NCBI RefSeq assembly: GCF_006345805.1
Contig: NW_021824248.1
Location: 1-19,415, forward strand
Direction of reading: 5' to 3'
From: Octopus sinensis
Lineage: Eukaryota
Length of the DNA stretch: 19,415 nucleotides
The position numbers and the translations under genes were made by a program. The notes beneath the pieces are model-generated. The model did no database searches and was not told where the DNA came from. It was given only the letters and a program-made list of their open reading frames with translations. This document shows positions 2,362 to 3,584 of the stretch, piece by piece. Position 1 is the first letter of the stretch; each line of letters begins with the position of its first letter.

Positions 2362-3584
2362 CAGTGGTTTTCAACCAGGGTTCCACGGAACCTTCAGGTT
2401 CCGCCAGTACAGTCCAGGGGTTCCGCAAGAAGTTACAAAACTCTAAAATCGGCAGTAATTTTTAATTGTCCTGTGCAGATATGTGTGCATAAGACTATTA
2501 AATTATTGCACAGGGGTTCCTCGAGCCAGTGGAATGTTTCCTTGGGGTTCCGCTCCAGCAAAAAGTTTGAAAAGCACTGATATAGGGGATTCACAAAATC
2601 AACTTCGATACAGGCATACTGGTGTGAACACAAATGGGTAGGGCTAAAAAGAGATCAAACTGTCCAGGCAGTGCAACAGGAAACTAGGGATACCTGACTG
2701 GCTGAATATATAGAGCAGTGGTTTTCAACCAGGGTTCCACCAGTACAGTCCAGGGGTTCCGCAAGAAGTTACAAAACTCTAAAATCGGCAGTAATTTTTA
2801 ATTGTCCTATGCAGATATGTGTGCATAAGACTATTAAATTATTGCACAGGGGTTCCTCGAGCCAGTGGAATGTTTCCTTGGGGTTCCGCTCCATCAAAAA
2901 GTTTGAAAAGCACTGATATAGGGGATTCACAAAATCAACTTCGATACAGGCATACTGGTGTGAACACAAATGGGTAGGGCTAAAAAGAGATCAAACTGTC
3001 CAGGCAGTGCAACAGGAAACTAGGGATACCTGACTGGCTGAATATATAGGGCAGTGGTTTTCCACCAGGGTTCCACCAGTACAGTCCAGGGGTTCGCAAG
3101 AAGTTACAAAACTCTAAAATCGGCAGTAATTTTTATTGTCCTTGCAATATGTGTGCATAAGACTATTAAATTATTGCACAGGGGTTCCTCGAGCCAGTGG
3201 AATGTTTCCTTGGGGTTCCGCTCCATCAAAAAGTTTGAAAAGCACTGATATAGGGGATTCACAAAATCAACTTCGATACAGGCATACTGGTGTGAACACA
3301 AATGGGTAGGGCTAAAAAGAGATCAAACTGTCCAGGCAGTGCAACAGGAAACTAGGGATACCTGACTGGCTGAATATATAGAGCAGTGGTTTTCCACCAG
3401 GGTTCCACCAGTACAGTCCAGGGGTTCTGCAAGAAGTTACAAAACTGCTCAAATCGGCAGTAATTTTTAATTCTCCTGTGCAGATATGTGTGCATAAGAC
3501 TATTAAATTATTGCACAGGGGTTCCTCGAGCCAGTGGAATGTTTCCTTGGGGTTCCGCTCCAGCAAAAAGTTTGAAAAGCACTG
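2362..3584. mobile_element. Array of four hAT-type MITEs (2362-2579, 2716-2915, 3052-3247, 3384-3584) separated by three 136-bp spacers
   Basis: TIRs CAGTGGTTTTCAACC and GTTTGAAAAGCACTG (13/15 match). The outer 8-bp TSD is GGATAGAG (2354-2361) / GGTTAGAG (3585-3592). The spacers are near-identical. Confidence 0.9.

Follow-up and report, generated by a model that had tools for sequence, protein, structure and literature searches.

A four-copy hAT MITE array within a SINE of Octopus sinensis: a candidate composite insertion with later expansion in place

Introduction

How short transposon-derived arrays originate and how they spread to new loci is still debated, and the direct evidence for composites made by transposase comes almost entirely from maize genetics. 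Composite Insertions of the maize elements Ac/fAc are produced by alternative (reversed-ends) transposition and aborted re-replication (Zhang et al., 2014, PMC4270019; 10.1101/2020.08.10.245175). They carry transposon termini at their borders, enclose donor flanks that have been switched and fused, and are themselves macrotransposons (PMC4270019; 10.1101/2020.08.10.245175). Macrotransposons of Ac are treated by Huang and Dooner (2008) and Wang et al. (2022). At the maize White Cap (Wc) locus, a Tam3L macrotransposon whose two outer 8-bp duplication copies match was subsequently amplified by unequal crossing-over and is present in 1–23 copies (10.1101/082677). Reversed-ends transposition of maize dhAT has generated tandem direct duplications with repeats of 116–148 bp and 1.26 kb, each beginning with a hAT element (Zhang et al., 2013, PMC3744419).

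Tandem dimers of transposable elements have given rise to arrays, including one of roughly 16 copies of the hAT element hobo (McGurk and Barbash, 2018, PMC5932611), and tandem-repeat MITEs and MITE satellites are represented by DTC84 of clam (PMC3879986), gadMor-hAT-1784 of cod (PMC12368964) and the cases reviewed in PMC9659126.

This study describes a MITE array of the octopus Octopus sinensis and compares it with these systems. The window is the whole stretch of DNA that was analysed, namely 19,415 nucleotides of contig NW_021824248.1 (assembly GCF_006345805.1) read on the forward strand. An initial annotation had proposed that a MITE and its donor-site flanks were amplified into a tandem array (or a small circle was rolled) that then moved as one unit, and had named as its alternative the insertion of a two-MITE composite that expanded in place.

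Structure of the Array

The array occupies positions 2362–3584 and has the layout MITE-(136-bp spacer-MITE)x3, as delimited by end-motif searches and alignments; Tandem Repeats Finder describes it as a repeat of period 336 with 3.5 copies and 97% matches. All four MITEs are in direct orientation (forward strand, as are the spacers), and the borders are formed by the left end of MITE1 and the right end of MITE4. MITE1 (2362–2579, 218 bp; left end CAGTGGTTTTCAACC) is the sole copy with an 18-bp hairpin (CGGAACCTTCAGGTTCCG, 2386–2403), which is missing from MITE2 (2716–2915, 200 bp), MITE3 (3052–3247, 196 bp) and MITE4 (3384–3584, 201 bp; right end GTTTGAAAAGCACTG), the last of these being the furthest diverged and having four private changes. 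MITE3 carries four single-base deletions, possibly consensus errors, together with zero private substitutions, a pattern that looks like unpolished long-read consensus; base-level detail at this copy and the local assembly may be noisy.

The spacers are 136 bp each. Spacer 1 (2580–2715) is composed of ATATAGGG, 120 bp and ATATAGAG, and is read below as foreign DNA that would derive from the flanks of a donor site; spacer 2 (2916–3051) has ATATAGGG at both ends (8/8), and spacer 3 (3248–3383) equals spacer 1 in every base. The three differ solely at position 135 (A/G/A), and the paired 8-mers at the spacer ends match at 7/8, 8/8, and 7/8 positions, so that each inner MITE lies between matching 8-mers (7/8 or 8/8). 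The layout given in the initial annotation is borne out by the coordinates, by Tandem Repeats Finder and by the unit alignments, and so are its spacers with duplication-like ends, which start with ATATAGGG and end with ATATAG(A/G)G.

MITE Ends and Affiliation to the hAT Superfamily

The inverted ends of the MITEs start with CAGTG and agree at 13/15 positions (CAGTGGTTTTCAACC against CAGTGCTTTTCAAAC, the latter being the right end read inward). The short terminal inverted repeats of hAT elements reportedly begin with YARNG, and the octopus ends have this form. The target-site duplications are of the 8-bp length that characterizes hAT elements, both at the outer borders of the array (7/8) and at the inner boundaries given above. 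In the Buster family the duplicated target has the consensus nnnTAnnn (PMC3517528), and GGA-TA-GAG and ATA-TA-GAG, the outer and inner octopus targets, fit it with a central TA, which the initial annotation had likened to Charlie-type hATs; the comparison covers just these two sites.

Several subterminal motifs of the form GGGGTTCC(GC) are present, and subterminal repeats can also be given as GGGGTTCCGC. The hairpin of MITE1 is perfect (CGGAACC-TTCA-GGTTCCG), and exactly its 18 bases are absent from MITE2–4. It holds two of the four GGTTCC/GGAACC motifs of the left end, including the copy that mirrors CGGAACC near the right end; should transposase bind these motifs, the array would retain a single intact left end, the outermost one.

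The 19-kb window contains no ORF for a hAT transposase. An inverted-repeat scan of positions 2000–4000 at seed 9 gave no result because the MITE ends carry mismatches, and a literature search with the MITE end sequence returned no match. On the basis of its ends and target duplications, the element is probably a non-autonomous hAT MITE of about 218 bp, Buster/Charlie-like, with a hAT transposase as the likely agent of its movement.

Outer Duplication and the Interrupted SINE

The array is bounded by a pair of 8-mers on the forward strand, GGATAGAG at 2354–2361 and GGTTAGAG at 3585–3592, the left copy with a central TA. They match at 7/8 positions, and random pairs of 8-mers from the same window reach at least 7/8 with P = 0.0026. 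The flanking DNA on both sides has the features of one interrupted SINE (forward strand), of which the left part (2333–2361, 5' limit approximate) contains an A box (TGGCTCAATGG, 2345–2355) and the right part (3593–3800, 3' limit approximate) a B box (AGTTCGATTCC, 3620–3630) and the core GTTCTTGAGCAAGACACTT. Each box agrees with its consensus at 10/11 positions (TRGCNNAGTGG for the A box). Independent support for the outer junction comes from the empty site: when the array and one 8-mer are deleted in silico, the distance from A box to B box becomes 44 nt, start to start, which is the canonical spacing of tRNA from position 8 to position 52, and the rejoined site rebuilds a D-arm, GCTC-AATGG(A/T)TA-GAGC. 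The SINE body is 75% identical to positions 7696–7769 of the window and 78% identical to positions 7188–7251 of a locus of O. bimaculoides (L003). ARAGORN calls no tRNA in the rejoined site and Rfam finds none in the right part, so the two boxes, the distance between them and the repeated body are the grounds for speaking of a tRNA-like SINE head.

These coordinates shift the point of insertion. The initial annotation had placed it within the A box of the SINE; it lies in the D-arm just 3' of that box, between the A and B boxes, and overlaps only the last two A-box bases. The claim that the outer duplication is unlike the inner one stands in part: the outer pair itself is present (7/8), but the marked difference is not, as the two share ATAGAG (6/8). 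For this reason the own two flanks of each edge MITE still match at 5/8 positions. The locus thus has one outer 8-bp duplication (7/8), with a target that is continuous after removal of the array, as in a composite, and edge flanks that match at 5/8 as well; the borders expose a 5' and a 3' end facing outward, as in a macrotransposon.

Extension of the true left element end into TGGCT..ATAGAG was considered and rejected, given that the right side has no counterpart and that the A-B spacing is restored only when the 8-mers are read as an 8-bp duplication. About 30 bp past the end of the interrupted SINE body, another tRNA-like SINE head, from a different family, begins and covers about 3823–3900.

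Origin of the Spacer and Likeness of the Two Targets

By BLAST, the spacer resembles the neighbouring SINE flanks over no more than some 20 nt at the junction, and it has no match in the rest of the window. It is therefore foreign DNA, and local duplication of one MITE together with its present flanks cannot account for the array; the earlier claim that the spacer came from elsewhere and has duplication-like ends is supported accordingly. From these ends, the spacer would represent the flanks of an earlier MITE site, and since both inner flanks carry the same 8-mer, both would come from one earlier insertion site.

Candidate local origins were discarded on the same comparisons. Duplication in place of a MITE with local flanks is ruled out by the spacer being unlike those flanks. 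The signature of an in-place reversed-ends tandem duplication is not seen, as the spacer is not local flank and the inner MITEs have matching 8-mers on both sides. Gene conversion between homologous SINE copies bearing arrays was rejected as well, since the sequence directly outside the array is not the one found next to the inner MITE ends.

The resemblance between donor and SINE targets extends past the 8-bp duplication, TGGCT(C/G)AAT(GG/AT)ATAGAG, with agreement at 14/17 positions (2345–2361 compared with the spacer ends, e.g., 2699–2715). The nine bases upstream of the 8-mer agree at 8/9 positions between the two targets (P about 0.001–0.002). When the spacer is permuted and aligned with the SINE, the best local alignment falls exactly across the insertion point, with a score that 17 of 500 shuffles reach. 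An origin of the spacer as a permuted tRNA-like SINE was set aside (alignment p ~0.03, box spacing of 31 vs. 44, no ARAGORN call). With n = 2, the likeness of the targets may reflect a preference of the family for a motif like the A box/D-arm, a decayed tRNA-like donor, or chance; for insertions of Ac, target specificity has been reported to be absent. The reading of the duplications as nested is slightly weakened by targets so alike (14/17), and it rests on two to three bases and on the SINE spacing argument.

Searches for Further Copies

BLAST within the window located neither the MITE nor the spacer outside the array. Protein searches with the ORF that spans flank, MITE4 and spacer, and with the six-frame translation of MITE1 plus spacer, gave no matches. 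Exact-pattern scans of viral and prokaryotic genome contigs yielded none, and that of metagenome contigs gave one chance match in a GC-rich bacterial contig. About 85 kb of animal loci, reached via relatives of the mariner remnant described below, contained no MITE or spacer, a sample far too small to decide on family status. These loci comprise the 20-kb O. bimaculoides locus L003, which shares many SINEs with the window and has neither MITE nor spacer, and five others; the contigs of ENA sample ERZ21867824 belong to another organism.

Variant Markers and Order of Events

The units were compared in a MAFFT alignment, in which column 108 of MITE3 was read by eye, its three 1-bp deletions there being misaligned. 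Column 12 is A in MITE1 and MITE2 and C in MITE3 and MITE4, the 18-bp block is present in MITE1 and absent from MITE2, MITE3 and MITE4, and column 198 is G in MITE1, T in MITE2 and MITE3, and G again in MITE4. At four further columns MITE1–3 agree with one another and MITE4 stands apart: column 63 (C; T in MITE4), column 82 (no insertion; +G in MITE4), column 85 (A; C in MITE4) and column 108 (G; C in MITE4). Between the edge MITEs, MITE1 and MITE4, there are 4 substitutions and 1 indel in addition to the 18-bp block, and the spacers differ by 0–1/136.

Variants are shared among units in a mosaic fashion (AACC at column 12, GTTG at column 198, and +--- for the 18-bp block). The inner MITEs have the 18-bp deletion as in MITE4, and MITE3 also its C12, together with the MITE1 states at columns 63, 82, 85, and 108, which amounts to a 5' region of the MITE4 type joined to a body of the MITE1 type. 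In this alignment they look like recombinants of two diverged edge MITEs, as would arise from unequal exchange, with the caveat that A12 in MITE2 and T198 in both inner MITEs are unexplained by a single MITE4/MITE1 crossover and need extra steps.

The expansion appears recent because the spacers differ at 0–1/136 positions. By a rough estimate, a mismatch within 8 bp has a chance of ~4% at the level of divergence of the spacers vs. ~18% at that of the edge MITEs. The marker pattern modestly favours insertion of a dimer with subsequent growth at the site over movement of the array as a whole. This order is argued from a few markers and a single mismatched base among eight, and gene conversion or homogenisation could also keep old spacers identical. 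The main proposal of the initial annotation, in which the entire four-copy array moved as one, is disfavoured by the mosaic inner MITEs, the near-identical spacers and an outer duplication that is already 7/8, and its alternative, a two-MITE composite followed by expansion in place, is favoured by the marker pattern and the outer mismatch.

Proposed Mechanism and Alternative Explanations

On this evidence, at least MITE-spacer-MITE must have come from elsewhere via the outermost ends of two different MITE copies. With moderate confidence, we consider that a hAT composite, of the macrotransposon or the Composite Insertion type, was inserted into the SINE and later expanded to four MITEs. Transposase would have brought together a 5' end and a 3' end belonging to two different MITE copies, and both copies would have been inserted into the D-arm of the tRNA-derived SINE, with formation of the outer 8-bp duplication GG(A/T)TAGAG. 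The 120 bp trapped between them would be the right flank followed by the left flank of the earlier site, each with its ATATAG(A/G)G. Because one earlier insertion site is indicated, the ends would be those of sister copies of one MITE or of two copies of a donor duplication.

The arrangement MITE-(switched flanks)-MITE could have been reached by tandem duplication at the donor site followed by macrotransposition or, in one step, by insertion of the ends of two copies into unreplicated DNA, after which re-replication would abort and the broken ends would be joined. We know of no documented Composite Insertion formed from a single element on sister chromatids. Unequal exchange would have begun between the two MITEs, continued between 336-bp units and produced four MITEs and three spacers. 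By analogy with the Composite Insertion pathway of maize, which is a single event, amplification at the donor site beforehand would not be required (PMC4270019). We infer both the route of composite formation and the order of insertion and expansion from the features described above.

Among the alternatives, construction of the four-MITE array at the donor site and its transposition as a whole by the outermost ends is unlikely, although it predicts the same anatomy of outer and inner duplications and the total of 1.2 kb is well inside the reach of a hAT transposase. The hairpin, with the GGAACC/GGTTCC motifs mirrored at the right end, is retained solely by MITE1 at the left edge, and crippled inner left ends would leave the outermost left end for use. 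However, transposase would have to pass over six inner ends, three right and three left, and an insertion later than the expansion would be expected to leave an outer duplication of 8/8; the expansion is recent by the spacers (0–1/136), yet the outer duplication is 7/8 and MITE4 has its four private changes. A further reading sees in the locus an ordinary insertion of a propagating non-autonomous hAT family with internal tandem repeats that contain end sequences and vary in number. Internal tandem repeats are a common feature of MITEs and non-autonomous hATs (PMC3879986, PMC12368964, PMC9659126) and, according to the maize authors, Composite Insertions can become single mobile elements (10.1101/2020.08.10.245175). 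This reading is improbable at the octopus locus, where every unit is a complete MITE with both ends and its own duplication, whereas the known cases hold their repeats between one pair of ends; the 19-kb window, the 20 kb of O. bimaculoides and the other collections yielded no further copy, but that sample is far too small to weigh against it.

It is still less probable that a solo MITE was inserted and that a later internal break was filled in with sequence from a same-family array at another locus, through synthesis-dependent repair or gene conversion, so that the spacers came in with no composite transposition. Such copying accounts equally well for the outer 8-mer pair, for the SINE being intact and for a spacer of foreign DNA, and it would explain why MITE1 has a resident-type 5' part with the hairpin and the remainder is of the deleted type. 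A MITE-spacer-MITE array would nevertheless be needed elsewhere, which merely shifts the question to another locus, and the absence of the four private changes of MITE4 from the inner copies is unexpected if MITE2–4 were copied in one tract. Mis-assembly of repeats, affecting the copy number or the whole tandem layout, is the least probable explanation and very doubtful: the deletions of MITE3 are typical of an unpolished consensus, but the units carry distinct and partly shared variants, the junctions with unique SINE flanks are exact at both ends, and an artefact would not yield matching 8-mers or a restored A-B spacing.

Comparison with Described Systems

The composite insertion favoured here resembles the maize Composite Insertions in having the 5' and 3' termini of two copies at its borders, with one 8-bp duplication outside, and an interior that would consist of donor flanks in switched order with a new junction. 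In contrast, the maize insertions measure 10–24 kb, involve two different neighbouring elements and were seen de novo, whereas the octopus unit is 0.55 kb, its borders are complete MITEs with the same 8-mer on both inner flanks, which points to one donor insertion, and the event is deduced from one assembled animal locus. As in the Tam3L macrotransposon of Wc, two hAT copies would have moved the DNA between them, and the matching duplication is found at the outer junctions and not around single border elements; the Wc unit is 28 kb long with genes and has a known donor locus, in contrast to the 336 bp of non-coding octopus DNA.

The hobo array shares with the reading favoured for the octopus locus a DNA transposon dimer as the seed of a tandem array grown by recombination. 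The dimers of McGurk and Barbash come from double insertion at one preferred site and lie about one target duplication apart, whereas 136 bp of foreign DNA lie between the octopus copies. The dhAT duplications are on the size scale of the octopus spacer, but their model (PMC3744419) holds exactly two repeats of local flank and a second element with a matching duplication on one side only, from which the octopus array differs. DTC84, pearl/CvA, miDNA4, Xstir and gadMor-hAT-1784 show the same link between MITEs and short satellite-like arrays, which is frequent in molluscs; their repeats are internal or partial-MITE monomers, unlike the octopus monomer of a whole MITE and a putatively flank-derived spacer.

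Repeat Content of the Window

The window is dense in SINEs and microsatellites, and many of its SINE copies are 87–92% identical to those of O. bimaculoides L003. Another small tandem derived from a transposable element is found at 9984–10554, where a 263-bp unit is present in 2.2 head-to-tail copies with 89% matches; the unit is an abundant SINE-like repeat that also occurs at 2040–2190, 4292–4437, 8068–8220, and 17247–17386. A 349-bp tandem duplication at 10879–11538 (1.9 copies, 94% matches) shows no transposon ends at its borders. An element with internal 63-bp repeats is represented by at least two copies in opposite orientations (7128–7496, +; 12554–12889, -; and also 5652–5770), and the ORFs of its two long copies have the motif ALPNANHS.SVVGAFYVP in common.

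The remnant of a mariner/Tc1-like (DDE_3) transposase lies at about 15426–16233 on the reverse strand (ORF 15613–15972). Its protein shares 66–68% identity with numerous ORFs from ENA and with a protein of O. bimaculoides, the best named relative, and its DNA is 82% identical to positions 10222–10645 of O. bimaculoides L003. Unusually long microsatellites occupy 1098–1349, 5011–5431, 15100–15350, 17720–18286, and 18630–19244, and comprise three (TA)n tracts of 250–420 bp, one (ATAG)n tract of 570 bp and one AC-rich tract of 600 bp.

Significance

The locus is a single non-coding site with no evident effect on a gene, and by analogy with the systems compared above it appears as a tidy and fairly ordinary example of a process already known for hAT elements. 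A more far-reaching reading, to which we give little credence, treats the 336-bp unit as a mobile satellite seed, in which arrays would be moved repeatedly by their outermost ends, since the 18-bp subterminal hairpin is gone from the inner left ends, and delivered preferentially to pol III A-box/D-arm-like sequences of the TGGCTNAATNNATAGAG type within SINE heads; if true, it would mean a targeted, transposase-driven spread of tandem arrays through a SINE-rich cephalopod genome. That the two target sites are so unusually alike may point to tRNA-like SINE heads as preferred targets. If confirmed, the composite insertion considered here would provide a miniature natural example from an animal in which composite insertion, outer duplication and array growth are seen at one place, and would indicate that MITEs are able to transduce host DNA.
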